Shown in pieces: positions 17,811-42,332 of a stretch of DNA of 64,000 bases. The position numbers and the translations under genes were made by a program. The stretch comes from Hyalangium minutum. Its GTDB lineage: Bacteria > Myxococcota > Myxococcia > Myxococcales > Myxococcaceae. The notes beneath the pieces were generated by a model. The model saw only the letters and a program-made list of their open reading frames with translations, was not told the DNA's origin and did no database searches. Location of the stretch: contig NZ_JMCB01000001.1 of NCBI RefSeq assembly GCF_000737315.1, positions 434,001 through 498,000 of the forward strand, in the 5' to 3' direction. The number at the start of each line of letters is the position of its first letter. Position 1 is the first letter of the stretch.

Positions 17811-18059
17811 GTGAACATGGCCCCCTTGAGAAAGTGGCGCCTACCCCGGGCGAGCTGCACACCGCTGAAGCTGACGCGGCATCAGCGCAGGCAATCTCGA
17901 CCCGCTCGCAAGCCATGCCCAGGGACGCAAGTCCGTGGAGTCACCCGGTGTACGTTCATCATCCGCTCCACGTTCAATCGTCAGTGGAGCGATCAGACCC
18001 TGGCTCACTGGCGCCACGGCCACGGCACGGCAACGGCGCAAATCCTGCTCGACGCGGTG

Positions 18060-18300
18060 GGGCGCTCAACCGGACGCTGTTCTCGCCAGCCTTCGCCTGG
18101 GACCGCATCGCCGGGCAGCTCGGGCACATCGCCGAGCAGGGAGTCATGGGGCGGCTCATCCGCCCCGCTTCGCGCTACGCAGGTCTCAGGACGGGCTGAG
18201 CATCCACGCAGGAGGCGGCCTGCTGGTGTTGCTCACCGTCACGGTACTCTCAGTCTACAAGCCATGGGGCAGGACTCCGTCCTGCTGGATAGGCAAGCCC
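18060..18300 (+). pseudogene. Frameshifted 3' remnant of a DUF2269-like membrane protein gene
   Basis: GQLGHIAEQGVMG...YAGLRT, frameshift near 18196, then LSIHAGGGLLVLLTVTVLSVYKPWGRTP. The LSVYKPWG ending is recalled from this family; no intact 5' part. Confidence 0.45.
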
Positions 18301-18351
18301 GGCGGGCGCGCTTTCCAGTCTGTCGATTTGAAGACACAGTGCCTGTCACGA

Positions 18352-20569: not shown

Positions 20570-21694
20570 CTAGAGCAGAGTGACGAAGACCGCTTTACTT
20601 CCAAAGCCCACAATATCCTGGCGGCCATCACCGTTGACGTCCGCCATCATGCGAGGGTCCTGACCGACGAGCCACCCGCTCCCCCATCCGTAACTATCCA
20701 CGCGGAATTGCGGCCCCGTGAAGTTGCTGCCTGTTGAGAGGGCGATGTAGACACCGGCATTGCCGAACCCAACGATGTCCTGCCTGCCATCGTCGTTCAC
20801 CTCCGCCGTCATGCGCGGGTGATTTTCGACGCGCCAACCTCCCGCCTCGTAACCAAAGTCCGCGACCCAGAGCTGCGGCGCGGCAAAGCTGCTGCCCGTG
20901 GAGAGGGCGACGAAGACACCGGCATTGCCGAACCCGACGACGTCCTGCCTGCCATCGCCGTTCACGTCCGCCATCATGCGCGGGTGGTTTTCGACGCGCC
21001 AACCTCCCGCCTCGTAACCAAAGTCCGCGACCCAGAGCTGCGACGTGGCGAAGCCGCTGCCTGTCGAGAGGGCAACGTAGACACCGGCATTGCCGAACCC
21101 GACGACATCCTGCATGCCATCACCGTTCACGTCGGCCATCATGCGCGGGTGTTTCTCGACGCGCCAACCTCCCGCCTCATAGCCAAAGTCCGTGACCCAG
21201 AGCTGCGGCGGGGTGAAGCTGCTGCCCGTGGAGAGGGCGACGTAGACACCGGCATTGCCAAACCCGACGACATCTTGCCTGCCATCGCGGTTCACATCCG
21301 CCATCATGCGCGGGTGGTTTTCGACGCGCCAGCCTCCCGCCTCGTAACCAAAGTCCGCGACCCAGAGCTGCGGCGGGGTGAAGCTGCTGCCCGTGGAGAG
21401 CGAGACGGAGACACCGGCATTGCCGAACCCGACGATGTCTTGCCTGCCATCGCGATTCACATCCGCCATCATGCGAGGATGTTTTTCGACGCGCCAACCT
21501 CCCGCCTCGTAACCAAAGCCCGCGACCCAGAGCTGCGGCGGGGTGAAGCTACTGCCCGTGGAGAGAGAGACGTAGACACCGGCATTGCCGAATCCGACGA
21601 TGTCCTGCCTGCCATCGCCGTTCACGTCCGCCATCATGCGCGGGTGGTTTTCGACGCGCCAGCCTCCCGCTTCGTAACCGAAGTCCGAGACCCA
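20570..21694 (-). repeat. Seven intragenic repeats, 165-bp (55-aa) period
   Basis: WVADFGYEAGGWRVE(N/K)HPRMMADVNGDGRQDIVGFGNAGVYVALSTGSSF; six near-identical copies plus a diverged seventh. Confidence 0.95.
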
Positions 21695-22903
21695 GCGTTG
21701 CGGCTCCGAGAAAGCGAAAAGCAAGCGGTTGGGAGAACCCGCACCCGGGTCGGAAACCACGCCAGACGTAGCTCGATCGTTCAGCGCTTGACTGACTGCT
21801 GCCGGAGTGGCGTTTGGATTGATCTCCAAGTAGAGGGCCGCGGCCCCCGTCACATGAGGCGCGGCCATGGAGGTGCCCGTGAGCTCTTTTGTCGCGGTAT
21901 CGCTCGAGAACCAGGCGGAAGTGATGTTGACGCCTGGAGCAAACATGTCGAGACAGGAACCGAAATTGGAGAAATACGGACGGGCATCACTCGAGTCCGT
22001 TGCCCCTACCGTCATCGCTTCAGCGATTCGAGATGGGGTATACTTGCACGCATCATCACCATTGTTGATCGCTGCAACAACATAGAGAATACCCTGACTG
22101 ATTGAGCCGCGGATCGCATCATCAACAGCCGGGTTCGCTGCCCCACCCAGGCTCATGTTTGCCACCGCTGGTTTCACCTGATGGGTTGTCACCCATTCAA
22201 TGGCAGCAATGACTCCAGACCAGGTGCCTGAGCCGTTGCAGTTGAGCACGCGTACCGAGTGCAGTTGGACCCCCTTGGCGAGCCCAAAGCGCTGACCGCC
22301 AATTGTCCCAGCGACATGAGTTCCATGACCATTGCAGTCCTCGGCGCCCCTCCCATCGTTGATGACTGTGAAGTCCGCCGAGGCGCGGCCGCCGAACTCG
22401 ACGTGCGTGGTCCTGATGCCCGTATCGAAGATATACGCGTGAACGGAGACGCCGGTCTGGTTGTACCGATAAACACCATCCAGCGGCCTGTTTCGCTGAT
22501 CGATCCGGTCCAGTCCCCAAGGTGCTTCGAGCTGCGCGTCGGCCAGCCGCACCACCCCGTCCTCTACGACATATTTGACCAGAGGATCGGCTGCGAGGGC
22601 ACGCGCTTGGTTCTCATCGGCGGCTATCGCGAATCCACGGAGAGCGTGCTGGTACTCCTCGAGCACGGTGGCCTGATACCGGAAGGCGAGCGTCGATGCG
22701 ACGGCCAGCACATCCTTCGCGGGCACATCGGCTTCCTTCAGCACGACAATGTATTGCCCTGGAATCGGATCTTCACTTCGAAGGAAACCCTGAGTGCTCT
22801 CTGCGCCAAGCGCGTGAGCAGCCTCGGTTTCTTGATTCATGTCCGGTCCACATGCCACACACATACACAACAACAGGGCTGGGACTGATGCTTTTACACG
22901 CAT
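20570..22903 (-). CDS. S8 subtilisin-like lipoprotein protease with I9 propeptide and C-terminal 7-repeat propeller
   Basis: Lipobox VAC; triad FDTG / HGTHVAG / GTSMAAP; seven FG-GAP-like repeats. Confidence 0.95.
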   Translation of the reverse strand: MRVKASVPALLLCMCVACGPDMNQETEAAHALGAESTQGFLRSEDPIPGQYIVVLKEADVPAKDVLAVASTLAFRYQATVLEEYQHALRGFAIAADENQARALAADPLVKYVVEDGVVRLADAQLEAPWGLDRIDQRNRPLDGVYRYNQTGVSVHAYIFDTGIRTTHVEFGGRASADFTVINDGRGAEDCNGHGTHVAGTIGGQRFGLAKGVQLHSVRVLNCNGSGTWSGVIAAIEWVTTHQVKPAVANMSLGGAANPAVDDAIRGSISQGILYVVAAINNGDDACKYTPSRIAEAMTVGATDSSDARPYFSNFGSCLDMFAPGVNITSAWFSSDTATKELTGTSMAAPHVTGAAALYLEINPNATPAAVSQALNDRATSGVVSDPGAGSPNRLLFAFSEPQRWVSDFGYEAGGWRVENHPRMMADVNGDGRQDIVGFGNAGVYVSLSTGSSFTPPQLWVAGFGYEAGGWRVEKHPRMMADVNRDGRQDIVGFGNAGVSVSLSTGSSFTPPQLWVADFGYEAGGWRVENHPRMMADVNRDGRQDVVGFGNAGVYVALSTGSSFTPPQLWVTDFGYEAGGWRVEKHPRMMADVNGDGMQDVVGFGNAGVYVALSTGSGFATSQLWVADFGYEAGGWRVENHPRMMADVNGDGRQDVVGFGNAGVFVALSTGSSFAAPQLWVADFGYEAGGWRVENHPRMTAEVNDDGRQDIVGFGNAGVYIALSTGSNFTGPQFRVDSYGWGSGWLVGQDPRMMADVNGDGRQDIVGFGSKAVFVTLL

Positions 22904-28932: not shown

Positions 28933-30435
28933 TCAAGGCTCCTGGGAGGTTGGCGGGCGCAATACCGGCCCCAGAGCGTGGTAGCACTTACCCTGGTAGT
29001 CGTAGAGTGTGTCACCGCATGGAGGGCGCTCATCTTCAAGCGGACCCAACCAACAACCTCCGTTGATCTCCTTCTCGCCGCGCAGGCAAGGTGGCGTGCG
29101 CTGCCCAGGGAGCGGGGTTTTCGGCATCGGTCGGCCGAAAGCAAGAAAAGAGGGGGGTACTGCTCCAGACACGTCCTGCACACTGGCCAGAGCCTCCTCA
29201 GCCACTCCAGCATCCGGTGTCAGCTCGCGCGCTACCTCCTCCGGTGCTGCGAGCCAGGGAGTGGGGGACAGCGCGGGCTGAACCTGGGGCGTCGGAAGGG
29301 TGATGAGCAAGGCGGCAAGGGCCACCACCACCCCAGTTCCCAGCGCGGAAGCAGCGGCCTGCGTGAGCCAGGGGGGCAAGCCTTGCCGACGGCGGCAGTC
29401 CCCGTGCGTCGAGGAACTGCGCGAGGACGGAGGGTGCCGAGAGGGTTCGGTGCCGGAGCTCCCACTGGCAGGCACATCATTCTGTCCATCCGAGGAAGGA
29501 GGACCGCTCTCTGTCTGAAGCGCACTGGCAGTGGAGCGGATGTGTTGGTCCAGCCCCTCCCCATTGGACTCCACCAGCACGGTGCACTCTCGAACGAGCT
29601 GTTCCGCGGTGCCCCTGTCTTTCGGCACATCCGATAGCAGCCTGAGGATAATCTTCTCAAGTTCCACACACACCGTGGCCCGCTGAGTGGGCGGAGGCAC
29701 CTCGCGCTCGATGACGCCAGCTCCATCCGTGCAGGGAGGGGGGTAAGCGCCCGTCACGAGCCGATAGAGGGTGACACCTAGGGCATACAGGTCATCCGAG
29801 GGATGGGACTTCCACCGTGCCTCCGTGTCCATCCGGAAGCGATACACGAAGTCTCGCTGCTCTGGTGGCCGGTACGCGCTGGTTCCCGGGGGCGCTGGTG
29901 AGTCCGTGAGGGCGCGCCCGTCTGCCTTCCAACAGCTCCCCCAGTCGAGGAGCACGGCGCGGCCTTCGGAGGTGACACGAATGTTGTCGCCTTTCACGTC
30001 CCGATGGATGACTCCGCGGGCGTGAGCGGATGCCAGGGCGCCTGCGAGCTGCACCAGCACCCGGAGCACATCCCGGCTGGTGCGCGGCTGCACCTTCAGC
30101 CACTCGTAGAGGCGCAAGCCCTGCACCAGCTCCATCACCACGTAGGGATAGAGGCAGGACTTCGACCCTGTCCACAGTCCTCGGTCCTCGAAGCGAGGCA
30201 TGCTTGGGGGCCCACCCTCCTCCAGCACCTCCGACTCGCGCTCGAAGCGCGCGTCCCATGGGCTCTTGGCCATTTTGAGCGCCACGGGGGGGGATTCCGG
30301 GTGGCCGGCGCGGCAGGCCCGGAACACCACTCCGAAGGTTCCGGAGTCCAGGCGCTCGAGGATCAGCCAGGCTCCCACAATGGAGCCGTGCACGGGGGGA
30401 TGAGGGTCTGCGGCTGTCACGTCATCATCACTCAT
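28933..30435 (-). CDS. Membrane Ser/Thr protein kinase, copy 1
   Basis: LDSGTFG, VALK, HRDVKGDN, DWG, PPE, DLYALG; TM helix; C-terminal 4-Cys domain. Confidence 0.92.
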   Translation of the reverse strand: MSDDDVTAADPHPPVHGSIVGAWLILERLDSGTFGVVFRACRAGHPESPPVALKMAKSPWDARFERESEVLEEGGPPSMPRFEDRGLWTGSKSCLYPYVVMELVQGLRLYEWLKVQPRTSRDVLRVLVQLAGALASAHARGVIHRDVKGDNIRVTSEGRAVLLDWGSCWKADGRALTDSPAPPGTSAYRPPEQRDFVYRFRMDTEARWKSHPSDDLYALGVTLYRLVTGAYPPPCTDGAGVIEREVPPPTQRATVCVELEKIILRLLSDVPKDRGTAEQLVRECTVLVESNGEGLDQHIRSTASALQTESGPPSSDGQNDVPASGSSGTEPSRHPPSSRSSSTHGDCRRRQGLPPWLTQAAASALGTGVVVALAALLITLPTPQVQPALSPTPWLAAPEEVARELTPDAGVAEEALASVQDVSGAVPPSFLAFGRPMPKTPLPGQRTPPCLRGEKEINGGCWLGPLEDERPPCGDTLYDYQGKCYHALGPVLRPPTSQEP

Positions 30436-30708
30436 GAAGTTCTCTCCGAAGAAGGTAGGGAGCCGGGGAGCACCCTACCTCATCGGTAGCCAGCCAGGCA
30501 CCCGCCCCCTTGGGTAGCGGACAGGACAAGCCCCGAGGCAAGCACGCCCAGGGCCAGCTTTGGCTTGCTTAGGATCAACTGAGGGCTGGCAGGGTTGCAG
30601 AGGGTGTCGCGGCTCCGCGCACGGTCAGGGGTGCCAGCCCCCCTCGAGTTGCGGTAGTTCTCGTGAAGCTGTTCCAACGAGGTCGCACCTGAGCTGGGAG
30701 AACATCAC

Positions 30709-31902
30709 GTGACGTTTCAACGGGAAGAGGTGGCATCGAGCAAGGGCTGGCGGTGGGGAGTGGTCCTGCTGGCGGCGGTGGCCGGGTGTGCTGGGGAGAA
30801 GAAGGAGGTTCCGTCCCCCGAGCAGGAGGCGCTGCGGGCCGCCGAGCAGGCCTCTCTGCAGCTGTCGCCGCCTGCCGGGTGTACAGAGATCACTCTGGGC
30901 GAGCTTCAGAATGGCACCGAGCTGACGCCGGTGCTGTATGGGTCACAGCCGACGTATCGCGGAGAGTTCTCGAGCTTCGGAGACCCTGCGGTCGCGGACG
31001 CCGCGCGCATCCGGCTCGACGTGAACACGGCTCCCGGGCTCCATGAGCTGGCGGCGGGCGGCACCAACCTGTTCCAGTGCGAGCAGTGCGTGTGGGGCTA
31101 CCAGGATCTGGGTTCACCGGCGCAGAAGATGTTCGTCGCCGAGTCGGGACAGCTCCTGCTGGCGCGCAAGGTCTCGCCACAGCAGACCCTCGGTGCGCTC
31201 TCCAACGTGGTCCTGCGCGAGTCGGTGAACGCGCCGCCGACCGGTGTTCCGTACGCCGGAAGCGCTCCGGTGCCGGGCGGTGAGTGCCGTTGGATCCGCT
31301 TCGCGACGTGGAACACGATTCGCCCGGGTGGCTGTGATCCCCGCGACAGCTCGGTGACCGCGAACTTCCTGCGCCGCACCTGCGTCGCCGACGATGCTGC
31401 GGCCACCGATGGCACGATGGAGTGGTCGCTGGGTGCGAAGAAGCAGGGTGAGGCATGCCAGTACACGCCAGCGGCGAGCACGAGCGAGCTCGCGTCGACG
31501 GACTGCGCGCAGGGCTACGCCTGCTCCGGCGCCTACACCGACGAGCGCCAGTGCCTCGTCACGTGTGACTTCATGGCGGCGGATCCGGGCTGCCCGACCG
31601 GCACCGTGTGCGGCGTCTACGGCCTGTGCATCGAGCAGGCGGTCATGGAGCCCATCGGCTACCTCTTCGAGCCAGCGCTCATCGGCGAGTCCTGCAGTGT
31701 TGGCTTCGCCGAGTTCTGCGGAGTCGAAGGCGCGCGAGGCCTGTGTGCCGACGTGACAAGGTCGGGCACTGGTACCTGCTATCCCTACAAGCGCGCGCGC
31801 TCGGAGTGCGGTGCGGGCGAGGAGCTTGGCTACATCTCCTACCCGCTCCCCGGCGGGGGGAGCGATCGGACCTACGGGTTCTGCTATCCCGACGGCCGCT
31901 GA
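30709..31902 (+). CDS. Cys-rich lipoprotein, intact copy
   Basis: Lipobox-like VAGC; many Cys pairs in the C-terminal half; divergent from kinase copy 1. Confidence 0.8.
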   Translation: MTFQREEVASSKGWRWGVVLLAAVAGCAGEKKEVPSPEQEALRAAEQASLQLSPPAGCTEITLGELQNGTELTPVLYGSQPTYRGEFSSFGDPAVADAARIRLDVNTAPGLHELAAGGTNLFQCEQCVWGYQDLGSPAQKMFVAESGQLLLARKVSPQQTLGALSNVVLRESVNAPPTGVPYAGSAPVPGGECRWIRFATWNTIRPGGCDPRDSSVTANFLRRTCVADDAAATDGTMEWSLGAKKQGEACQYTPAASTSELASTDCAQGYACSGAYTDERQCLVTCDFMAADPGCPTGTVCGVYGLCIEQAVMEPIGYLFEPALIGESCSVGFAEFCGVEGARGLCADVTRSGTGTCYPYKRARSECGAGEELGYISYPLPGGGSDRTYGFCYPDGR

Positions 31903-32220
31903 AGCGGCAGCACGCGGTGCATCCTCCGCATTCCTCACCTTCACGGCGGCGGTGCGGCCCGGATAACCGGGCCTACGTCATCGCGTTCGGCTGCGTAGCT
32001 ACCCAAGGCAAGGCCTGATACAGGGACGCGAGCCCATCGGCTCGGAGCCGCGTGCCTCGCGGCCTACTTGGGAGGGACTCTCGCCGTCACCGAGCTGGGG
32101 AACTTCCCAGTCCCGGTGTTGGGAGCCGGCGCGGGGCCTGTGCTTGGCTGGTATTCCTCGCTCTGCATCCTCCAAGTCTTCGCTCGAACGGAGTGAGGAT
32201 TGCAAAGGGGGCACGCATGA

Positions 32221-33723
32221 TCAGGGCTCCCCCGAAGTGGGCGTCTTGGGACCGGTGAAGGAAGCGAAGTAGCAGCCGCCTTCGTATTCGAACATCTTGT
32301 CGCCACAGGGCGGCACTTCTTCCCGGAGAGGGCCAACCCAGCAGGCCCCGTTGATCTCCTTTTCACCGCGCTCACAGGGCGGGCGGCGCTGATCCGGGTA
32401 GGGCTTCGAGGGCATCGGCCGCCCGAGGGACAGGAGCCACGGCCCCACTCGTCGCTCCACTTCCTGCACGCGGGCCAGAGCCTCCTCACCCACCCCTGCA
32501 TCCGGCGTCAGCTCGCGCGCTACCTCCTCCGGTGTGGCGAGCCAGGGCGTGGGGGACAGCGCGGGCTGAACCTGGGGCGTGGGGAGGGTGATGAGCAGGG
32601 CAGCAAGGGCCACCACCACCCCAGCGCCCAGCGCGGAAGCGCCGGCCTGCATGAGCCAAGGGGGCAAGCCTTGCCGACGGCTGCAGTCACTCAGCGTCGA
32701 GGAGCTGCGCGAAGACGGAGGGGGCCGAGAGGATTCGGTGTCGGAGCTCTCACTGGCAGGCGCATCATTCTGTCCATCCGAGGAAGGCGGGCCGCTCTCC
32801 GTCGGAAGCGCACTGACAGTGGAGCGGATGTGTTGGTCCAGCCCCTCTCCATCAGACTGCACCAGCACGGTGCACTCTCGAACGAGCTGTTCCGCGGTGC
32901 CCCTGTCTTTCGGCACATCCGATATCAGCCTGAGGATGATCGTCTCGAATTCCACGCACACCGTGGCCCGCTGAGTGGGCGGCGGCACCTCGCGCTCGAT
33001 GAGGCCAGCTCCATCCGTGCAGGGAGGAAGGTAAGCGCCCGTCACGAGTCGATAGAGGGTGACACCTAGGGCATACAGGTCATCCGAGGGACGGGACTTC
33101 CACCGCGCCTCCGTGTCCATACGGAAGCGATACACGAAGTCTCGCTGCTCTGGTGGCCGGTACGCGCTGGTTCCCGGGGGCGCCGGTGAGTCCGTGAGGG
33201 CGCGCCCGTCTGCCTTCCAACAGCTTCCCCAATCGAGCAGCACAGCACGGCCTTCGGGGGTGACGCGAATGTTGTCGCCTTTCACGTCCCGGTGGATGAC
33301 TCCGCGGGCGTGGGCGGATGCCAGGGCGCCTGCGAGCTGTACCAGCACCCGGAGCACATCCCGGCTGGTGCGCGGCCGCGCCTGCAGCCACTCGTAGAGG
33401 CGCAGGCCCTGCACCAGTTCCATCACCACGTAGGGATAGCGGCGGGACTTCGGCCCTGTCCACAGTCCGCGGTCCTCGAAGCGGGGCATGCTTGGGGGCC
33501 CACCCTCCTCCAGCACCTCCGACTCGCGCTCGAAGCGCGCGTCCCATGGGCTCTTGGCCATCTTGAGCGCCACGGGGGGCGAGTCCGGGTGGCCGGCGCG
33601 GCAGGCCCGGAACACCACTCCGAAACTTCCCGAGTCCAGGCGCTCGAGGATGAGCCAAGGCCCCACGATGGAGCCATGCACGGGGGGATGAGGGTCTGCG
33701 GCTGTCACGTCATCATCACTCAT
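32221..33723 (-). CDS. Membrane Ser/Thr protein kinase, copy 2
   Basis: Same motifs and length (500 aa) as copy 1. Confidence 0.92.
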   Translation of the reverse strand: MSDDDVTAADPHPPVHGSIVGPWLILERLDSGSFGVVFRACRAGHPDSPPVALKMAKSPWDARFERESEVLEEGGPPSMPRFEDRGLWTGPKSRRYPYVVMELVQGLRLYEWLQARPRTSRDVLRVLVQLAGALASAHARGVIHRDVKGDNIRVTPEGRAVLLDWGSCWKADGRALTDSPAPPGTSAYRPPEQRDFVYRFRMDTEARWKSRPSDDLYALGVTLYRLVTGAYLPPCTDGAGLIEREVPPPTQRATVCVEFETIILRLISDVPKDRGTAEQLVRECTVLVQSDGEGLDQHIRSTVSALPTESGPPSSDGQNDAPASESSDTESSRPPPSSRSSSTLSDCSRRQGLPPWLMQAGASALGAGVVVALAALLITLPTPQVQPALSPTPWLATPEEVARELTPDAGVGEEALARVQEVERRVGPWLLSLGRPMPSKPYPDQRRPPCERGEKEINGACWVGPLREEVPPCGDKMFEYEGGCYFASFTGPKTPTSGEP

Positions 33724-33996
33724 GAAGTTCTCTCCGAAGAAGGTGGGGAGCCGGGGAGCACCCTACCTCATCGGTAGCCAGCCAGGCACCCGCCCCCCTG
33801 GGTAGCCGACAGAACAAGCCCCGAGGCAGGCACGCCCAGGGCCAGCTTTGGCTTGCTTAGGATCAACTGAGGGCTGGCAGGGTTGCAGAGGGTGTCGCGG
33901 CTCCGCGCACGGTCAGGGGTGCCAGCCCCCCTCGAGTTGCGGTAGTTCTCGTGAAGCTGTTCCAACGAGGTCGCACCTGAGCTGGGAGAACATCAC

Positions 33997-34474
33997 GTGA
34001 CGTTTCAACGGGAAGAGGTGGCATCGAGCAAGGGCTGGCGGTGGGGAGTGGTCCTGCTGGCGGCGGTGGCCGGGTGTGCTGGGGAGAAGAAGGAGGTTCC
34101 GTCCCCCGAGCAGGAGGCGCTGCGGGCCGCCGAGCAGGCCTCTCTGCAGCTGTCGCCGCCTGCCGGGTGTACAGAGATCACTCTGGGCGAGCTTCAGAAT
34201 GGCACCGAGCTGACGCCGGTGCTGTATGGGTCACAGCCGACGTATCGCGGAGAGTTCTCGAGCTTCGGAGACCCTGCGGTCGCGGACGCCGCGCGCATCC
34301 GGCTCGACGTGAACACGGCTCCCGGGCTCCATGTCGGGCACTGGCACCTGCTATCCCTACAAGCGCGCGCGCTCGGAGTGCGATGCGGGCGAGGAGCTTG
34401 GCTACATCTCCTACCCGCTCCTCGGCGGGGGGAGCGATCGGACCTACGGGTTCTGCTATCCCGACGGCCGCTAA
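33997..34474 (+). pseudogene. Internally deleted, frameshifted copy of the Cys-rich lipoprotein
   Basis: Matches 30709-31045, then jumps to the 31762-equivalent position (junction CCATG|TCGGGCACTGG at ~34333); 716 bp missing; ends TAA 34474. Confidence 0.9.
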
Positions 34475-34626
34475 AGCGGCGGCACATGGGCGCGCAGTCC
34501 CACTCCGCGCCCCCCGCAGGCATCGCCACTCTCGGCCACCTGGAGGGTGTGTCCGGCCCGAACAGACGCAGGTACGTGTCACCCGAGAACGCTGTGCCCG
34601 CCAGGACCCATCCCAGAGTTCCTTCG

Positions 34627-34770
34627 CGCAGACTTCCGACCGAGTCGGAACTGGCCAACGGCGTGCCGCCCCTGCCCGCAGAGCGGCGAGCGCAGACTTC
34701 CGACCGAGTCGGAACTGGCCATCAGGCCCTGGAGCCGGAGCACCGTCCGCGTTCGCGGACTGCACCTGTC
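34627..34770 (+). repeat. 144-bp triple-dyad module, copy A
   Basis: Two GCAGAC-TTCCGAC-CGA-GTCGGAA-CTGGCCA units 64 bp apart plus GTCCGCG-TT-CGCGGAC; direct repeat of 40046-40189. Confidence 0.9.
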
Positions 34771-34957
34771 AACGATCCGGGCTGGCAGGCCCAGGCCGTG
34801 CGGCTGCGCTACACATTCGACGCTCAAGAAGCACCGTGTGAGGAGGACGTGCACTTCACCTCGCTTACGCCTCGCCCGCCGATGGCGTGGCCATGTGGAA
34901 CGTGCAGCGCGCCTTCACCTGCCGAGGCCCCCGCTGCGAGCATCAGATGAGGCAGCG

Positions 34958-34981
34958 GTGGGTTCGATTCCCGCTGCCTCC
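34958..34981 (+). mobile_element. att-like site resembling the tmRNA 3' end (T-arm plus acceptor strand), copy 1
   Basis: GTGGGTTCGATTCCCGCTGCCTCC; one mismatch to the copy at 39831. Confidence 0.65.
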
Positions 34982-35046
34982 GCGCGGCTGGGGGATGGGC
35001 CGATCCAACTCCTGCACCGCGCTCTCCCGCGCCTCGGGCGACAGGT
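34982..35046 (-). pseudogene. C-terminal remnant of a tyrosine integrase
   Basis: Minus strand HLSPEARESAVQELDRP resembles the (YA)HLSP...AV..LD tail after the catalytic Tyr of phage integrases, and abuts the att-like site. Short match only. Confidence 0.55.
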
Positions 35047-35050
35047 GCCA

Positions 35051-35241
35051 GAATCGCTCTCACCCCTCCTGCTCCCTTCACGGACGCCAACACCCTGAAG
35101 CCTGCCTCCACACCTCAAGCACGCCCTTAACACATCCAGGGCGAACGTCTTCAGCAGCCCGGCCCAGTCCAAACGGGGTGGGCCCTCCTTCCAAAGGCTC
35201 CTCCACCCTCGCGGCAAAGGCGGGGCTCTCCTCCGTAAGCC
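35051..35241 (-). mobile_element. IS91-like (Y2 HUH) transposase C-terminal remnant, copy 1
   Basis: PRLDWAGLLKTFALDV..CLRCGGR...RVLA.VKGAGGVRAI zinc-ribbon-like tail with frameshifts; near-identical to 38028-38217. Confidence 0.6.
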
Positions 35242-35306
35242 CCGGCTCCGCCCCTGCTTGAGGGAGCGCTCGTCTGGCGAGCGCGCCCGACGGCGGACTT
35301 CGTGTT

Positions 35307-35435
35307 GCTCGTGCCCACACCATCGAAGAGGCCATCTTGTGGCACGGAGGGCAGGGCCGCGCGAACCGGGACCGCTTCAAGGCCATGTCAAAGGAAGAGC
35401 GCGGCGAGCTGATCGACTTCGTGAACTCGCTCTGA
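35307..35435 (+). pseudogene. 3' remnant of a di-heme oxidoreductase (DHOR/DUF1111-like) gene
   Basis: ARAHTIEEAILWHGGQGRANRDRFKAMSKEERGELIDFVNSL* matches the family C-terminus as recalled; no 5' portion present. Confidence 0.6.
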
Positions 35436-35484
35436 TCCCTGGTGCTTTCCGGGGTGGAATGAGTCGAATTGCGTGGAATGAAGT

Positions 35485-35522
35485 CCGGCGGCCGGAATCC
35501 TCCAAGGGGTTCCGGCCGCTGG
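35485..35522. terminator. GC-rich hairpin between convergent gene ends
   Basis: CCGGCGGCCGGAATCCT-CCAA-GGGGTTCCGGCCGCTGG, 17-bp stem with G-T pairs. Confidence 0.55.
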
Positions 35523-35562
35523 CATTTCAGGCTTCCCTTCAAGGACTCTCGAAACCCAGGGA

Positions 35563-37620
35563 CTATGGCACGGTGGCACCCCTGGCCTCGGCGCGCTCCC
35601 ACACCTGGATGTAGCCCTCGGCCGAGTTCATCAGCGGGTCCAGATCTTGGCTGCGGAGGCCCTGGCGGTGCAGGTCCGAGATGAAGTCCGGGAGCATGCC
35701 GACGTGCGCCAGGCCATCCTCGTTGATGTCGAAGACCTTGCTGCCCACCACGATGCGCTCCAGCTTCGTGGGGCTGTTCTCCACCGCGATGCTCAGGGGG
35801 TAGCGCGTGCGGGCCACCTGTTGGGCGGAGCTGCCGCCGTGGCACGCCTCGCCGCCAAAGCGCGGGCCCGGCAAGCCGGCCAGGCCGTTGAAGTCCGTGC
35901 CCAGGCCCACCGCCATCCCGCTCTGCTGCTGCGTGAGAGAGAGGTACGCCTGTGCCCAGCTCTGCGAGGTGTTGCCGCACTGGTGCTCCACCACCGGCTG
36001 GCCCGCGCCGCGCCAGGTGGGCACCTCGTCTCGCGAGCCCTGCTCCACGATGAGCGACACCATGCCTCCCACGTTGCGGATGCGCTGGAGCTGCGTGGCC
36101 TTGAGGCTGCCCTCGTGACGCTTGCCGCCGCGAGCCGTGTCGAACAGCGTGGTGTGGCCGCTCACCACCGGGTAGCTGTAGGGCTCCACCATCCCCAGCG
36201 TGTCGTCGAAGGCCCGCTTCGACATGTGGTCGATGTCGATGATCATCCTCCGGCGCATCATTCCGCGCACCAGCGTGCGGCCCAGGCTCGTGAGCCCCTG
36301 TGCGCCGCAGATGGGAGCCCGGGTGATGTCCCGCTTGTACTCGTAGCCCTCCTGGGAGCAGTCGCGCGAGTCGCCCTCGGTGATGATGTTGGTGAGCGCC
36401 GAGCCGCCGAAAGCGTTCTGCTTGAAGTGGATGGGGATCAGGTGACGCAGGCCCTGCGCCTGGTAGGAGTCCAGTCGCTCCTCCACGTAGGCGGCCGTGC
36501 ACGAACTGTCGCGGCGACAGTCGAAGAGGTAGTCCACCTCCGCGCCCAGGACCACCGCCAGCTTGCCCTGAGCGATGACGGCGCGAGCCTCCGAAGGTGA
36601 CCTCACGATGCGGTACCAGCCCCGCCCCGCGCCGCCGGCCTTGGAGTCGATGTAGCTCTGCATGGCATAGGCCTCGGCGATCTGCAGATCCACCGCCTCC
36701 ATGTCCGCGCCCGTGCGGCCCGGTGCCTTCTCCGCGTAGATGGGGAAGCCGAGCAGGTCCTGGTTGTTGACGGCCAGCATCACCATCAACCGCAGGCCGC
36801 CCTGCACGGCGCGGTAGAGCCAGTCCTCGTACATGGACTGGTGGGTGTAGCTGTTCCAGCGCGGCCAGCCATCGAACTGCGGATGGCCGCCCACCAGGTG
36901 GCCCGCGCCGCCGGTGCCGTAGCCCAGGGTCGCCATGATGCTGCCGAAGGAGTCTCGAGTCCCTCCAGGCCCGTGGACGCTGTTGCACCAGGGCAGCGCG
37001 GTGGACAAGGGGCCGTACGCCTTGCCGAAGAAGGCCTTGCCCCCAAAGGCGAGGTTGGCGAACTGGTGCGAGTGAAGATCCGCGAAGCCCTTCGCGGGAG
37101 CCTTGCAGTAGCAGGTGACGGCGGTGTCTCCCTGCTCGGCCGCCACGTCATCGCAGGACAGACAGGAGCCCGTGTGGGGGCCGCTCGTGACCTGGCCCTT
37201 CACGCACGCGCCGCGCTGGCCCCAGTTGGCGTCGCGGTTGGCGCAGAAGGCATCGCAGCTCACCGCGCCGTTGTTGCCTGGCTTCGAGAAGGTGCCCGCC
37301 GGTGGCGTGGAGCTGCACTCCGTCACCGGACTGCAGGTGGTGTCGGCCACCTCGAACTCGCCCCACATGCCGGAGGTGCCCTTGTTCACGCAGCGGGTAG
37401 GGCGCAGGAAGGCATAGCCGGACACGGTGGCGCCTGTGGCCTGGCACGCGCTCTCCCACGAGGTGTTGGCCGACACGCTCAGCAACTGCGCCGAGTACTG
37501 GCGCCGGCCCGAGTCCGTGCACCGGTCCTGCCGGAACGTACCCCAGTAGGGAGCGGCGATCGCCGAGGAAGAAATACACAGCACCCACCCCAGCACGGTG
37601 AAGCGAAGCATGCTCGTCAT
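35563..37620 (-). CDS. Secreted membrane-dipeptidase-family (M19 amidohydrolase) protein with Cys-rich N-terminal domains
   Basis: Signal peptide; FADLHSH (HxH), LGAEVD, IIDIDHMS, VVSGH, GLGTDFNG. Confidence 0.8.
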   Translation of the reverse strand: MTSMLRFTVLGWVLCISSSAIAAPYWGTFRQDRCTDSGRRQYSAQLLSVSANTSWESACQATGATVSGYAFLRPTRCVNKGTSGMWGEFEVADTTCSPVTECSSTPPAGTFSKPGNNGAVSCDAFCANRDANWGQRGACVKGQVTSGPHTGSCLSCDDVAAEQGDTAVTCYCKAPAKGFADLHSHQFANLAFGGKAFFGKAYGPLSTALPWCNSVHGPGGTRDSFGSIMATLGYGTGGAGHLVGGHPQFDGWPRWNSYTHQSMYEDWLYRAVQGGLRLMVMLAVNNQDLLGFPIYAEKAPGRTGADMEAVDLQIAEAYAMQSYIDSKAGGAGRGWYRIVRSPSEARAVIAQGKLAVVLGAEVDYLFDCRRDSSCTAAYVEERLDSYQAQGLRHLIPIHFKQNAFGGSALTNIITEGDSRDCSQEGYEYKRDITRAPICGAQGLTSLGRTLVRGMMRRRMIIDIDHMSKRAFDDTLGMVEPYSYPVVSGHTTLFDTARGGKRHEGSLKATQLQRIRNVGGMVSLIVEQGSRDEVPTWRGAGQPVVEHQCGNTSQSWAQAYLSLTQQQSGMAVGLGTDFNGLAGLPGPRFGGEACHGGSSAQQVARTRYPLSIAVENSPTKLERIVVGSKVFDINEDGLAHVGMLPDFISDLHRQGLRSQDLDPLMNSAEGYIQVWERAEARGATVP

Positions 37621-37809
37621 GTGACGACTCCGAGGTCGTTCCTGCCAGTCAGGCCGGTAGCTTCGGCTGGATTCAACACAGTGTCACCGCTTTGGTGGCC
37701 GGTGAGGGCGCGTGCCGGGGACTACCCGATCGTGGGCGGGGGCGGGAGGATGGGGAACTGCATTGGGCGTAGCGGGCGGGAGCAGAGCGGGAGGTGAGGG
37801 ACGCTAACG

Positions 37810-38217
37810 GGGAGCCCATGAGCCGCACGCCGAGCCGGCGCAGAAGCCATTCATCTCCAGCAAACACACGCCTGCCCAGCCCAGCCGCATTCCCAGCAGG
37901 GGCGCGGCAGGGGCCTGGCTCTCTTGGCGGGCTGGGGCGGCTTGAGTTTCAACACCCCGCGCTCTGGGGCGGCCCTCGCGCATCGGCCAGGTGCGCACTC
38001 GCCGGGGGCAACCCCCCACTGCTCCACAATCGCTCTCACCCCTCCTGCTCCCTTCACGCACGCCAACACCCTGAAGCCTGCCTCCACACCTCAAGCACGC
38101 CAACACATCCAGGGCGAACGTCCTTTTCAGCAGCCCGGCCCAGTCCAAACGGGGTGGGCCCTCCTTCCAAAGGCTCCTCCACCCTCGCGGCAAAGGCGGG
38201 GCTCTCCTCCGTAAGCC
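37810..38217 (-). mobile_element. IS91-like transposase C-terminal remnant with downstream non-coding tail, copy 2
   Basis: PRLDWAGLLKRTFALDVLACLRCGGR..RVLACVKGAGGVRAIVEQ, frameshifted; left boundary approximate. Confidence 0.6.
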
Positions 38218-38357
38218 GAGGGAGAGTGATGCTCCCTGCCTGTGGACAGGCCACGCAGCCCCCTTGGGGTACACTCCTGCCCAGGCTGCGCTCCCAGGTG
38301 GCGTAGCCGGCGCGTGGACGCTTGCTGAGGGAGTACGCACCGTGGCAGCGTCAGGCG

Positions 38358-39017
38358 ATGCTCCGCCGCCCGCCCTCTTCCGCGCGTGCCACATGGACGC
38401 TTCAGAGGCTCATAGCGATGAGCCTTATCATCCTCCTCGTCTCATGTAGCACTCCCTCGCATGTAGGGACTGGCCCGTCAGTCCCACAAGATCTGTCCAG
38501 GTACGCTCTGGTCATCGAAGAGACGGCAGATGGGCAGGTGATCCATTCCTGGGTCCCCGCCAGCAACTTCGACCTGTCGCGGTATGCGTACCACCCTCGT
38601 GCTGGAGGTGCCGAGCGAAGGATCGTCCACGCATCCTTCAGCCGAGACTGCGAGGAAGAGCGCGCTCAATGTGAAGAGATGTGCAAGGCGAGTCTCAAAG
38701 GCCGCAATTGGTCTCATGCAAGCGCGGGCTCAAAGGCAGAGATATGCCGCAGGCGGTGCAGGCCTGCCTATCTGGATTGCAGCCGGCTTCGTGAGCAAGC
38801 CGATGCTGTGAAGTTCCCAGTCACTGCCAAAGCAGTGGATTGGCTCAAGCGGCATCGCGAGGAGATCTTGCTGGGGACGGTTATCGTCATCGCAGGGGTA
38901 GCCTTCACCGTGGTCATCGTTGGCAGCGCAGGCACTGCCCTGGTTCTTATGCCGGCCGTGCTTCTCGTCTCCTCCGAGGTTCCTCCCATGCCCTACGCCG
39001 TAGAGGAAGAGCCGTGA
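38358..39017 (+). CDS. Lipoprotein with Cys-rich core and hydrophobic C-terminal helices; candidate toxin
   Basis: Lipobox LVSC; CEEERAQCEEMC...C...C...C; C-terminal hydrophobic stretch ILLGTVIVIAGVAFTVVIVGSAGTALVLMPAVLLV. Confidence 0.7.
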   Translation: MLRRPPSSARATWTLQRLIAMSLIILLVSCSTPSHVGTGPSVPQDLSRYALVIEETADGQVIHSWVPASNFDLSRYAYHPRAGGAERRIVHASFSRDCEEERAQCEEMCKASLKGRNWSHASAGSKAEICRRRCRPAYLDCSRLREQADAVKFPVTAKAVDWLKRHREEILLGTVIVIAGVAFTVVIVGSAGTALVLMPAVLLVSSEVPPMPYAVEEEP

Positions 39018-39787
39018 CGACACTCTCTGATCTGGCGGATGCTCATGAATTCATCGGAATCCGGTGGAGCAGCGGCCCTTCACCCGATGAAAAGCGGACC
39101 CTCGAGCTGGCGCGAGACATCCTGGACTTCATTTTTGCCACTGGGCAGAGCTACCGCTTCGAGGATTTTTCGCATCATCTCCAGGAGGGCGTTGAATCTC
39201 CCCCGCAGGGCCTGACAGGATTGAGTCTCCGCTTGAAGAGCGCAGAGCGTTTTTTCGAGAGACTCCTCCAGCCACCACCAACCGCTGGCGAGGCCGCTCG
39301 AATCCATGCCATCCTTGAAGCCATCCGCTTCGTTGCTACAACCAACCAGTACGAAGCCTTGGATGTGTACTTGAAGCATGTGGAGTCCCATGGCCCCCCT
39401 TTCGTAGTGGCCTCTTTCGAGACGCCAGGTGAGGCAGAGTCCTGGCTCCAAAACCACCCGCATCCACCCGATCCCGCCAGGATTTTGATTGGGGATCGCT
39501 CTCACGACGTGGTTCATGATCGGGAGACGAACATCCGCCGTCTGCCACGGAACCGCGACATCCATGACTATCTCGCGGAGCTCAAGCAGGTGGAGCCGCC
39601 CGTGGCCATCGCATCCTTCGCCACACGTGAGGAGGCAACAGCCTGGCTCTGGGAGCAGCCTGAGCCCGCCACGCACGCGTGGGTGGCCATCGCAGGCGAC
39701 CTCTATCTCGCGGCGTATTACCCCAACATCGGCCATCGAGCCCTCTACCCACTCTCCATGATCGCGGACGCTGACGCCTCGGCGTAA
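39014..39787 (+). CDS. Cytoplasmic partner protein with internal repeats; candidate immunity protein
   Basis: GTG start overlaps the upstream TGA (GTGA); duplicated motifs PxVVASFxTxxEAxxWLxxxPxP and L..A.....FI..TxQ...F/L. Confidence 0.7.
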   Translation: MTTLSDLADAHEFIGIRWSSGPSPDEKRTLELARDILDFIFATGQSYRFEDFSHHLQEGVESPPQGLTGLSLRLKSAERFFERLLQPPPTAGEAARIHAILEAIRFVATTNQYEALDVYLKHVESHGPPFVVASFETPGEAESWLQNHPHPPDPARILIGDRSHDVVHDRETNIRRLPRNRDIHDYLAELKQVEPPVAIASFATREEATAWLWEQPEPATHAWVAIAGDLYLAAYYPNIGHRALYPLSMIADADASA

Positions 39788-39830
39788 GAGCCAGAGGCTT
39801 CAGCTCTTAGGGTTTTGCTTCCGCCTTGCT

Positions 39831-39855
39831 GTGGGTTCGATTCCCGCCGCCTCCA
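39831..39855 (+). mobile_element. att-like site resembling the tmRNA 3' end, copy 2
   Basis: GTGGGTTCGATTCCCGCCGCCTCCA: T-stem GTGGG/CCCGC, TTCGATT loop, acceptor strand CGCCTCC with U70 and A73 as in Ala-charged tmRNA; no tmRNA body upstream. Confidence 0.7.
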
Positions 39856-39867
39856 AAAGCTCCATGG

Positions 39868-39945
39868 CTACAAGACGAGGAAGGGATCGCTGATCTTGAC
39901 CACCGTGTTGGAACCCGTCAGCACGTAGCGAAACTCGTAGGTACC
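39868..39945 (-). pseudogene. Orphan gene 3' tail (Ig-like beta-strand ending)
   Basis: GTYEFRYVLTGSNTVVKISDPFLVL* ends 12 nt from the att-like site; no intact 5' part. Confidence 0.4.
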
Positions 39946-40045
39946 GCGACATCCTGGACCGGATGTTCCGAGCCCATCGCCTCATCGACTGACCGGCTGG
40001 CATCGCCGCTGGCCCGGGCATGAGCCAGTCACAGCGCGACCTGCT

Positions 40046-40189
40046 GCAGACTTCCGAATGATTCGGAACTGGCCAACGGCGTGTCGCCCCTGCCCGTAGG
40101 GCCGAGAGCGCAGACTTCCGAATGATTCGGAACTGGCCATCAGGCCCGAGAACCGGGGGCACCGTCCGCGTTCGCGGAATGCGCCTGTC
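40046..40189 (+). repeat. 144-bp triple-dyad module, copy B
   Basis: Two GCAGAC-TTCCGAA-TGA-TTCGGAA-CTGGCCA units 64 bp apart plus TCCGCG-TT-CGCGGA. Confidence 0.9.
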
Positions 40190-40249
40190 GGGTGTGAGAG
40201 GCCCCACCCTCGTCGATTCAATGCTTTACACAGCCTGAATCCGTGAGTC

Positions 40250-40287
40250 ACAGCCCCGCGTTCCTCAAGACAGGGACGCGGGGCTGT
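40250..40287 (-). terminator. Hairpin downstream of the GH19 lysin gene
   Basis: ACAGCCCCGCGTTCCT-CAAGAC-AGGGACGCGGGGCTGT, 16-bp stem. Confidence 0.6.
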
Positions 40288-40334
40288 TGTTCTCCAGGGT
40301 GGCAGCCCCTCACGGGGCAGCAACACAACGAGGA

Positions 40335-42332
40335 CTACGCGCCGAGCACCCCGAGGGCCCGCTGGTAGTACGCGTCACGCGACGCCTTGCCGTTGTACCC
40401 GCCGTTCACCCGGTAGGTGATGGCGTCGAAGTTCCCCTGGTCCGCGTACGAGTTCAGGTTGCGGCTGTTCCAGAACCACGCCGCCGTCCGGAAGCCCACG
40501 TCCGGATCCGCCGCGCGCGTCGGGTTGTTCTCCAAATCAATACCCAGCGCCTGGCCCGCCGCACGGTAGTTGGAGCGGCCCGTCAGCTGGATCGGCCCGC
40601 GGCCCTTGAAGCGCACGCCGTCGCCCGGCTGCGTGTTGCCCAGGTCCGTGCGGCCCTCGTAGGCCGCGCCCGAGGCGATCTCCTCCATGTACCGGAACTC
40701 GCCGCTCTCGTGCGCCAGCTGCGCCAGGAACGCCGCCTGCCGCTTCGGCGTGTTGATGCCCGCCTCCGCCATCGCCGCGTTCAGGTGCGGCAACATCTGC
40801 TGCGCCCGCGCCTCGCTCAGGTTCGGCATGATCTGCCGCAGCTGCTGCATGCTCACCCCGCCCGTCGTGGGCGCCGGGGTGCTCGGCCCCGTCACAGGGC
40901 CCGGGCCCGTGGGAGCCGGGCTGCCGCCCCCACCCGCCCGCTTCGTCAGCGCCTCGCGCGTCATCGGCCCGTAGTAGCCGGTGCTCGGCACGCCGCTGTC
41001 CGCCTGGAAGCGCTTGAGCGACGCCTCCGTCTGCGGCCCGAAGATGCCCGGGCCCGTGTCCATCTGGGCCTGCGTCATGTACCCCATGTTCACCAACGCC
41101 GACTGGAGCTGACGCACCTCCTCGCCCTGGGTGCCCCGCTGCAGGTCGCTCTGCGGGACGCTGAAGCTCGGGGCCGCCGCCCGCTTCGTCAGCGCCTCGC
41201 GCGTCATCGGCCCGTAGTAGCCGGTGCTCGGCACGCCGCTGTCCGTCTGGAAGCGCTTGAGCGACGCCTCCGTCTGCGGCCCGAAGGTGCCCGGCCCGGT
41301 GTCCATCTGCGCCTGCGTCATGTACCCCATGTTCACCAGCGCCGACTGGAGCTGACGCACTCCCTCGCCCTGGTTGCCCCGCTGCAGATCGCTCTGCGGA
41401 ACCGGGAACCGCGACCCCCTGGACGGAGCAGGCTGGCTCGGGGTCGGAGTGGACGGCGCCGGCTGGCTCGGGGCCGGCTGCGAGGGGCTCTGCGTCGCCG
41501 TGCCACGATCGTTCACGAAGTACTGCACGTTCGCGTTCCCGAACGAGTCGCGCACGTGGCCATCATTGAAGTTGCGCGCACCCGCCTGGGCGATCGCCGG
41601 GCCATTGCCGTTGGCCTCACCGGGGCGCACCACCGCGATGTGGCCGATGCCACCCGGATTGTTCCAGCTCGCCACCGTGGGGTGGCCCGAGTTGGCCAGC
41701 CGCTGAGCCTCCTCGGCGCTCACCTGGCGCCAGCCGTTCGCCGGGCCATGGGTGTTCAGCCACCGGTTCACGCCGTTGGCGTCCAGCTCGCGACCCTGGC
41801 CCACGCCCGTGGGGTTGCCCGCGCCGTCCACCCAGTGCGGGATCTCCGCGCCCATCGCCTTCGTCACGTCCCACGCGAAGATGTTGCAGTAGGTGTTGCC
41901 CTCGCGCGGCGCATAGCGCGGGTTGTTCCCCACCGCGAACTGATCAATCACGTCCGCGTAGGTGGCCGCGTTGCGGTTGGACGGGCTGCCCTGCAGCGGC
42001 GCGTTCGCGGGGATCCACGCCCGCGTATCCGTGGTGCCCGGCGCCGCGCGCGTGCCGTCATATTGCCCGCTGGCCGGAGACGGAACGGCCCCCTGCACCG
42101 CCGCCGCCGACGCCTGGGCCGGCTGCGCCTGGAAGCCATCGCCCGCCTGCGGACCCGACCCGGGCCTCGGCTGCGCGTCGAACCCGTCCGGGATCGTCAG
42201 CTGACGCCCCGTGACAATCAGGTTCGGGTTCTGGATGTTGTTCGCCTTGGCGATCGCGTCGACCGTCGAGTTGTAGCGACGCGCAATGCTGCTCAGGGAC
42301 TCGCCCGAGCTGATCGTGTGGATGGAGGACAT
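40335..42332 (-). CDS. Multidomain peptidoglycan hydrolase: LysM, CHAP/NlpC-like, 2x PG-binding, GH19
   Basis: N-terminal HTISSGESLSSIARRYNSTVDAIAKANNIQNPNLI (LysM); TYCN...GHIAVV; two LQRG.QGE.VRQLQSAL...FGPQTEASLKRFQ repeats at 243-bp period; AFLAQLAHESG and FKGRGPIQLTGRSNY (GH19). Confidence 0.9.
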   Translation of the reverse strand: MSSIHTISSGESLSSIARRYNSTVDAIAKANNIQNPNLIVTGRQLTIPDGFDAQPRPGSGPQAGDGFQAQPAQASAAAVQGAVPSPASGQYDGTRAAPGTTDTRAWIPANAPLQGSPSNRNAATYADVIDQFAVGNNPRYAPREGNTYCNIFAWDVTKAMGAEIPHWVDGAGNPTGVGQGRELDANGVNRWLNTHGPANGWRQVSAEEAQRLANSGHPTVASWNNPGGIGHIAVVRPGEANGNGPAIAQAGARNFNDGHVRDSFGNANVQYFVNDRGTATQSPSQPAPSQPAPSTPTPSQPAPSRGSRFPVPQSDLQRGNQGEGVRQLQSALVNMGYMTQAQMDTGPGTFGPQTEASLKRFQTDSGVPSTGYYGPMTREALTKRAAAPSFSVPQSDLQRGTQGEEVRQLQSALVNMGYMTQAQMDTGPGIFGPQTEASLKRFQADSGVPSTGYYGPMTREALTKRAGGGGSPAPTGPGPVTGPSTPAPTTGGVSMQQLRQIMPNLSEARAQQMLPHLNAAMAEAGINTPKRQAAFLAQLAHESGEFRYMEEIASGAAYEGRTDLGNTQPGDGVRFKGRGPIQLTGRSNYRAAGQALGIDLENNPTRAADPDVGFRTAAWFWNSRNLNSYADQGNFDAITYRVNGGYNGKASRDAYYQRALGVLGA

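Follow-up and report, generated by a model that had tools for sequence, protein, structure and literature searches.

The sequence analysed here (the window) is a 64-kb stretch of the Hyalangium minutum genome, positions 434001-498000 of the 997,508-bp contig JMCB01000001.1 in assembly GCA_000737315.1, and the element under study is a set of nested direct repeats that includes two copies of the 3' end of a transfer-messenger RNA (tmRNA) gene. Homology to an upstream tandem duplication ends at 34485 on the left, and synteny with the closest relative (L004, 86.6% nucleotide identity) resumes on the right at 40329; the repeats therefore sit inside a 5.8-kb variable segment (34486-40328). This entire segment is absent from L004, in which homology breaks off exactly at 40329, the 3' end of a GH19 gene (the left junction in L004 was not recovered). 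The original prediction described three pairs of direct repeats lying one within the other, and self-BLAST and pattern counts placed all three, in direct orientation, at the positions reported below: 144-bp modules outermost, 24-nt cores between, and 194-bp repeats innermost.

The middle repeats were searched for by using the pattern GTGGGTTCGATTCCCGCYGCCTCC, which matched twice in the window, at 34958-34981 (core C1, GTGGGTTCGATTCCCGCTGCCTCC) and at 39831-39854 (core C2), both on the forward strand. Two matches were reached in 0/100 shuffled sequences, and approximately 0.01 copies of the 24-mer would be expected in the window by chance. C1 and C2 agree at 23 of 24 positions and have the same T-stem and T-loop sequences. 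Scanning one genome per species with the pattern GYGGGTTCGATTCCCGCYGCCTCC yielded at least 120 loci, and among the matches listed ARAGORN put the 24-mer at the extreme 3' terminus of a tmRNA gene in almost all loci, across phyla; the genes concerned include those of H. versicolor (L062), Stigmatella aurantiaca (L130) and H. minutum itself (L131 1893-2252). The 24-mers are tmRNA 3' ends, consisting of the T-arm and the 3' strand of the acceptor. A tRNA origin was rejected on the basis of the ARAGORN placements and the genome scan.

The true tmRNA gene (ssrA) of the host was located via a conserved neighbour, an M16 peptidase gene, on contig JMCB01000032.1, where it ends in GCGGGTTCGATTCCCGCCGCCTCC-ACA followed by a terminator. 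C2 matches this end at 23/24 positions and C1 at 22/24. Both cores have GTGGG where the host ssrA has GCGGG, and the GTGGG of C1 is also found in a Pyxidicoccus core (L166). No tRNA or tmRNA gene was detected by ARAGORN or Rfam anywhere in the 64-kb window (partial Rfam matches there were weak), and because the window holds no tmRNA body the two cores are true orphans, as had been proposed. The idea that the window is the far portion of a tandem array located at ssrA was rejected, since ssrA lies on the other contig; the window is at least 434 kb from either end of its own. A third, degenerate core near 37670 was also rejected because local alignments there were no better than those of shuffled sequence.

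Several further tmRNA-type ends were observed during these comparisons. At the host ssrA locus, a degenerate second core (GAGGGTTCGATTCCTGCCGACTCC, L131 898-921) lies about 970 nt downstream of ssrA and is followed by the C-terminal fragment of an SDR gene, an arrangement suggestive of an old, small islet at the genuine tmRNA gene; contig JMCB01000032.1 stops 1.9 kb beyond ssrA. In an uncultured bacterium (CAZLXP010000029.1, L081 1858-3452), a tmRNA gene is followed by two more copies of its 3' end roughly 780 nt apart, forming tiny tandem islets. In Archangium violaceum the purC stop codon is directly followed by an 11-nt arm-like stretch and a tmRNA-type core (L087 7860-7900), and purC of H. 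minutum (L131 13680-13700) lacks the core-type sequence found there. A motif of about 40 nt (containing CACGCAGCCCCCTTGGGGTACACTCCTGCCCAGGC) follows att-like cores at a distance of 50-190 nt in three genera (L163 7262-7300, 9666-9709 and 13642-13667; L165 9038-9078; L067 3847-3905 and 6209-6248), and in the window (37866-37913 and 38265-38303) it flanks the second of the inner repeats on both sides.

C1 occupies the position of an attL-type site and carries the 3'-end remnant of a tyrosine integrase gene on the reverse strand (34943-35047). In this remnant, 22 codons (35047 to 34982, HLSPEARESAVQELDRPIPQPR) are followed by a frame that continues through the antisense core to a stop codon at 34945-34943. 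All 22 residues (22/22) are identical to the C-terminus of P0165, a full-length integrase of 395 aa, which makes the integrase-like tail noted beside the first site genuine and supplies the complete protein with the same tail. The tail is also related to an Archangium integrase (11/18 residues identical, E=4e-6) and to provirus L167 (77% nucleotide identity). In two Archangium loci (L051 and L105), full integrases ending in ERYAHLSPDxRREAVGVLDRP stand in the same position and orientation beside a core, and in S. aurantiaca DW4/3-1 (L130) the C-terminus of a family integrase converges on the true tmRNA 3' end, and behind the integrase lie genes of excisionase-like (HTH_17) and VapE-like type. 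The geometry in the window is the same as in these three loci and in L167, with only the last 22 codons present; the 66 nt that they span are all that is left of the int-side arm before a fragment of a transposase gene begins.

The integrase family is widespread. More than 400 relatives of the Archangium integrase were found, in Myxococcus, Corallococcus, Stigmatella, Hyalangium and other genera, and 20 proviral contigs of 27-43 kb in IMG/VR encode the family to which the window tail belongs, with DNA polymerase and Ser/Thr kinase genes near int. P0165 itself falls in a cluster whose members from Stigmatella, Hyalangium and Corallococcus share at least 90% identity; ADO69783 and ADO69118 of S. 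aurantiaca DW4/3-1 belong to it. One close M. xanthus relative adjoins tRNA-Arg rather than tmRNA. Some orphan cores with an integrase (L051, L105) fit the attP-type junctions of tandem prophages, and the gene upstream in L051 encodes a beta-helix protein that is tailspike-like by the look of its translation. The 35-aa integrase tail had no tblastn match in 50,697 GenBank phage records, an exact-pattern search of IMG/VR for the phage arm or the P' arm returned no match, and the 78 kb read from H. minutum showed no full-length family integrase.

At the opposite end, C2 is preceded by a 24-nt phage arm (TTAGGGTTTTGCTTCCGCCTTGCT; arm and core together 39807-39854, forward strand), forming an attR-type end. 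Arms of the same family were found in Stigmatella (L163, two copies), Pyxidicoccus (L021 and L166) and provirus L167; a conserved chromosomal position for the Pyxidicoccus core was rejected because the flanking proteins were not orthologous. Directly before the arm is a 1.59-kb accessory module (38218-39806, forward strand; GC content 58-60%) containing a lipoprotein gene (38412-39017) and a gene for a 257-aa protein (39014-39787), with the start and stop codons overlapping as GTGA. In L167 a homolog of the 257-aa protein (53% amino acid identity, E=3e-80) is followed by about 470 nt, the arm, the core, and an int that reads from the other strand, so the gene order at the phage end away from int closes with the 257-aa gene. 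The module is 96.7% identical at the nucleotide level in S. aurantiaca DW4/3-1 and 95.1% in H. versicolor, and it occupies a different locus in each genome. In Stigmatella (L163) two arm-plus-core modules, separated by 2.46 kb, enclose the gene pair, no integrase occurs within 8 kb, and the core, at about 9.41 Mb, is some 1.8 Mb from ssrA (about 7.58 Mb). In H. versicolor (L165) a degenerate core lies 170 nt past the pair. A 29-nt relic downstream of C2 (40017-40045, forward strand) matches the stretch directly before the arm and core in Stigmatella (L163 9464-9492), with a score of 38 against a shuffle maximum of 28.

The two proteins had no match in Pfam (E<=10), NCBIfam, PADLOC or PDB sequences, and the proposal that they form a toxin-like pair found no support, given that no toxin or immunity domain was detected in Pfam, NCBIfam or PADLOC. 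Assignment to DUF6310/DUF5953 was rejected for lack of similarity to the pair in L006. DUF6310/DUF5953 pairs with a 4-nt overlap, as in the window pair, do recur in the same variable regions and beside family integrases (L163 15394-16137; L006 8001-9667; P0209).

The inner repeats (35048-35241, T1, and 38024-38217, T2; 194 bp each) agree at 96% in an alignment of 197 nt that includes two 3-nt indels. Once corrected for a +1 frameshift, the repeat matches positions 444-487 of the 509-position NCBIfam model ISCR_clade_Ia (E=2.3e-7), and it weakly matches annotated IS91-family transposases in more than 500 plasmids. The inner repeats are thus derived from an ISCR/IS91-type transposase gene, on the reverse strand, of which only the C-terminal region is present; no complete HUH-Y2 transposase open reading frame (ORF) was found. 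T1 extends to the right for 24 nt (35242-35265; whole fragment 35048-35265) into homology with the ssrA locus of H. versicolor (L062), and T2 extends to the left (X, 37774-38023; whole fragment 37774-38217) into homology with L004, L067 and L166. These opposite extensions, together with the same +1 frameshift in both copies, indicate that T1 and T2 are partly overlapping pieces of a single dead gene region (order T-Y ... X-T, spacing 2,976 bp) rather than two insertions. The family named in the earlier description as IS91-like tails was therefore correct, and the picture of two separate insertions was not. ISCR/IS91 fragments were also found beside cores in a metagenome-assembled genome (L006, an N-terminal fragment 170 nt away that matches ISCR_clade_Ia at E=1.5e-27), in L067, in L166 (a tail 75 nt upstream of the arm and core), in L163 (about 200 nt downstream of the core) and in L062, where the core is that of the genuine H. 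versicolor ssrA. This association with cores across loci is real and may be either causal or incidental.

Between the inner repeats lie a fragment of a di-haem oxidoreductase (DHOR) gene (35261-35437, forward strand; about 58 C-terminal codons, PF06537) and a gene for a 685-aa secreted protein with a peptidase M19 domain (35563-37620, reverse strand). The M19 gene is 93.8% identical at the nucleotide level to that of Pyxidicoccus sp. MSG2, with homology limited to the ORF (35556-37631). Comparisons of flanking sequence by tblastx produced GC-rich noise only. The cargo is thus 94-97% identical in nucleotide sequence across genera, compared with 73-76% for the flanking GH15 protein in the same genera. 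Judged from this comparison of sequences, the M19 gene and the lipoprotein/257-aa pair are recent horizontal imports.

These features are best accounted for by regarding 34958-39854 as the gutted shell of one temperate phage from a family that inserts at the tmRNA (ssrA) 3' end, a reading that we consider probable while holding it with only somewhat better than even confidence. C1 and the integrase tail would be the int-side (attL-type) end, and the gene pair, the conserved 24-nt arm and C2 the opposite (attR-type) end. The family is common in Archangiaceae and Myxococcaceae, its intact members measure 27-43 kb, and all but 4.9 kb would have been lost here. The interior would have been overwritten by an ISCR/IS91-type pseudogene (the two overlapping fragments), the DHOR fragment and the acquired M19 gene. 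Because both ends match the normal ends of this prophage family, decay of a single prophage explains the anatomy. The remnant is most likely immobile. Its position away from ssrA may have arisen because a copy of the site, itself phage-derived, was already present and served as the target, or because an array was moved by rearrangement or by ISCR-type rolling-circle mobilisation. A crossover in the T-loop would leave the target-derived left half of the T-stem in attL; the GTGGG of C1, which differs from the host ssrA and is shared with C2 and the L166 core, fits integration into an earlier phage-derived site copy. Of the features expected of islands in tmRNA genes, flanking repeats nearly identical to the host tmRNA 3' end are present, as is phage DNA at the other att site (the 257-aa gene, the 24-nt arm and C2 arranged as in L167); an intact regenerated tmRNA at one end is absent from the 64-kb window. 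Such a remnant would be a known kind of object, a decayed ssrA-type prophage with an insertion sequence (IS) and imported genes, with a modestly interesting pattern of ectopic sites.

A number of observations weigh against this explanation. There is no tmRNA body beside C1 and no ssrA-type terminator after C2, so the pair is not a textbook attL/attR at ssrA, and the two cores could come from different elements of a former tandem array. P0165 ends in ...PQPRAALG and does not run into the tmRNA core; its own att core may therefore differ. S. aurantiaca DW4/3-1 contributes two or more different members to the P0165 cluster, one with the UniRef label n=3, and if these are separate genomic copies, then sites beyond a single ssrA, or tandem copies, are needed. 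The bracketed gene pair of Stigmatella looks more cassette-like than a simple remnant would. Lastly, a prophage shell does not explain the outer 144-bp modules, which would be a separate local duplication.

Another possibility is that no integration ever took place at the window site. C1 and C2 would then be junction fragments of two elements from a former tandem array of ssrA islands, carried in by an ISCR/IS91 element or by a rearrangement. The ISCR/IS91 fragments beside cores at five more loci (L006, L067, L166, L163 and L062) are in keeping with such a route, mobilisation of neighbouring DNA by ISCR elements is established, and the sequence after the ectopic cores in L163, L165, L021 and L166 resembles ssrA-downstream or terminator sequence by eye (unscored), as if the host flank came along. 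However, the analysis identified neither an intact ISCR copy nor an oriIS or terIS, there being no intact reference copy from these genomes to define the ends; the downstream flank of C2 is unlike the ssrA terminator; and the association may merely reflect the build-up of IS elements in prophage junk. We regard relocation of this kind as unlikely, although ISCR-type mobilisation may have acted at the window.

Two related readings give the cores an active role. In the broader one, the tmRNA 3' end with a short phage arm would serve as a portable att site in Archangiaceae and Myxococcaceae, and a recently spreading integrase lineage would shuffle cargo units that lack an integrase; the lipoprotein/257-aa pair, 95-97% identical in three genera, would be one such unit, and the site pair in the window is perhaps recombinable. 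This we consider doubtful. The original prediction was narrower, treating the DNA between C1 and C2 as a non-autonomous cassette excised and re-inserted in trans, at portable tmRNA-derived att sites, by an integrase encoded elsewhere. Orphan cores similar to those in the window do occur away from ssrA in other myxobacteria (Stigmatella L163, H. versicolor L165 and the metagenome-assembled genome L006), and the same 1.5-kb gene pair stands at three unrelated loci with a core downstream each time, in Stigmatella with an arm and core on both sides and no integrase nearby. The integrases with the exact tail are at least 90% identical between genera, S. aurantiaca DW4/3-1 has two or more different ones, and the T-stem and T-loop are identical in C1 and C2. 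Yet both ends of the element are already accounted for as ordinary prophage ends (the int end and the 257-aa/arm end), the int-side arm is down to 66 nt and the interior is pseudogene debris. In addition, the H. minutum sequence that was read (78 kb) contains no full-length family integrase, and some of the orphan cores with an integrase (L051 and L105) fit junctions of tandem prophages. Movement as a cassette was thus not borne out and is, in our estimation, a shade more doubtful than the broader scheme. An integron-type cassette array was rejected because the repeats, which have phage arms, consist of tmRNA T-arm/acceptor sequence and not of attC; no integron integrase was detected among the window proteins scanned with Pfam.

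That the 24-mers are chance T-arm-like sequences or ordinary tRNA fragments, tied neither to tmRNA nor to integration, has a negligible probability and is effectively refuted, for although the T-loop (GGTTCGATTCC) is generic and the Rfam partial matches are weak, two copies far exceed the chance expectation, the G3:U70-type acceptor pairing fits tmRNA, the 24-mer falls at a tmRNA 3' end in nearly every listed locus where it lies within a called gene, and one copy adjoins the P0165-type integrase tail and the other a phage arm as in L167.

The outer modules are M1 (34627-34770) and M2 (40046-40189), both read on the forward strand. Self-BLAST aligned 34628-34770 with 40046-40189 at 87.5% identity over 144 nt (E=4e-44), and weak similarity continues for about 35 nt upstream. 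Within each module a 30-mer occurs twice without any mismatch, at a spacing of 64 nt (in M1, 34628-34657 and 34692-34721), giving four matches in the window and none in 100 shuffles; the window contains only these two modules. Each 30-mer includes a 17-bp palindrome (TTCCGACCGAGTCGGAA in M1; TTCCGAATGATTCGGAA, perfect, in M2), and M1 also has a 3' hairpin (GTCCGCGTTCGCGGAC). Between the modules there is a compensatory change from C:G to A:T in both copies of each (TTCCGAC-CGA-GTCGGAA vs TTCCGAA-TGA-TTCGGAA), and the paired palindromes suggest candidate binding sites for a dimeric protein.

The modules had been put forward as the outer part of a mobile island, and they could not be tied to any mobile element. 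Relatives were found neither in IMG/VR, the JGI metagenomes and 186 fetched loci nor in the remaining 13.8 kb read from H. minutum; a relaxed pattern gave 31 matches in the JGI metagenomes, all chance-looking and in unrelated sequence. Reading of the module ends revealed no terminal inverted repeat and no flanking target-site duplication, unlike what a MITE/REP-type dispersed repeat would show. Two candidate identities were rejected: structured RNA, given folding z-scores of only -1.6 to -2.4 and no Rfam match, and ends of an IS91-like element, given that no module-like sequence lies by the IS91/ISCR fragments in L004, L006, L062, L067, L163 or L166. Our best guesses are paired operator-like protein-binding sites or scars of insertion by homologous recombination.

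To the left of the variable segment is accessory DNA that includes a 3.29-kb tandem duplication of a unit encoding a 500-aa Ser/Thr kinase and a 397-aa lipoprotein (29039-31045 vs 32327-34333 and 31761-31913 vs 34333-34485; 93-97% identity). In the second copy the lipoprotein gene is a pseudogene, having lost 715 bp internally and acquired a frameshift. Ser/Thr kinase genes near int are also seen in the IMG/VR proviruses of the integrase family of the window tail. Farther left, an 872-aa protein (17935-20553) matches the Pfam family SpecificRecomb (PF10136) over its full length (E=5e-177), and a reverse-strand ORF (20570-22903) encodes a secreted protease, subtilisin-like as judged from its translation, with about seven tandem 165-bp units (20577-21704, 79-88% identity) that encode the repeat FGYEAGGWRVE.HPRMMADVNGDGRQD.VGFGNAGV. 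To the right, from 40335 on, gene order is conserved with Hyalangium relatives and GC content at third codon positions is approximately 0.9; the genes encode the GH19/LysM protein, a 172-aa protein, GH15, LVIVD and FGGY proteins and others. The GH19/LysM gene contains a 243-bp internal tandem duplication (40934-41170 vs 41177-41413, 93-95% identity), and this duplication encodes two PG_binding_1 domains.

Taken as a whole, the nested-island picture resolves into familiar parts, namely the shell of a prophage, a transposase pseudogene of ISCR type and genes imported from elsewhere. The wider interest lies in a widespread myxobacterial integrase and prophage family linked to ssrA, and in a lipoprotein/257-aa pair that travels with tmRNA-end remnants between genera. 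Among the matches listed, and with block-edge cases removed, such remnants are orphaned far more often in named Archangiaceae/Myxococcaceae (7/8 hits) than in other taxa (about 7/109). If the ectopic sites are real targets, prophage-borne genes could spread beyond the single ssrA in these very large, plastic genomes.

Among known systems, CP4-57 at ssrA of E. coli is an example of an ssrA-integrated element. Prophages and islands that integrate into tRNA or tmRNA genes by means of tyrosine integrases have been defined in the Islander/TIGER work (PMC4383910). As in these islands, the repeats in the window are the 3' part of tmRNA, with an integrase end at one repeat and phage accessory genes at the other, and relatives of the remnant are found at the true ssrA (S. 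aurantiaca L130). Unlike them, the window has no intact tmRNA at either end, the host ssrA being on another contig, and its integrase amounts to 22 codons of an element reduced from about 30-40 kb to 4.9 kb.

In the myxophage Mx8, attP lies within the int coding region, integration rewrites the C-terminus of the integrase, and the targets are tRNA-Asp genes. The window likewise has a myxobacterial host and an integrase frame that enters the att core, which gives the last codons. By analogy with Mx8, tandem integration would explain attP-type junctions such as those in L051 and L105. The window sites differ in being derived from tmRNA, and Mx8 is a candidate parallel.

The IS91/ISCR family consists of HUH Y2 rolling-circle transposases that capture and mobilise adjacent DNA. 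The match to ISCR_clade_Ia places the inner repeats in the C-terminal CxxC region of a transposase of this kind, and the partial duplication around captured genes is like ISCR-associated structures. In contrast to the family, the window keeps about 65 frameshifted codons in two overlapping fragments, with no catalytic domain and no recognisable ori or ter ends.

Integration of prophages into prophages, by way of secondary attB sites on mobile DNA, has been demonstrated for lambdoid phages of E. coli (PMC8112680). Unlike that work, the case made here draws on only two base variants; the likeness is that a phage-derived att copy would have been the target away from the chromosomal site, which the GTGGG carried by both cores of the window fits.

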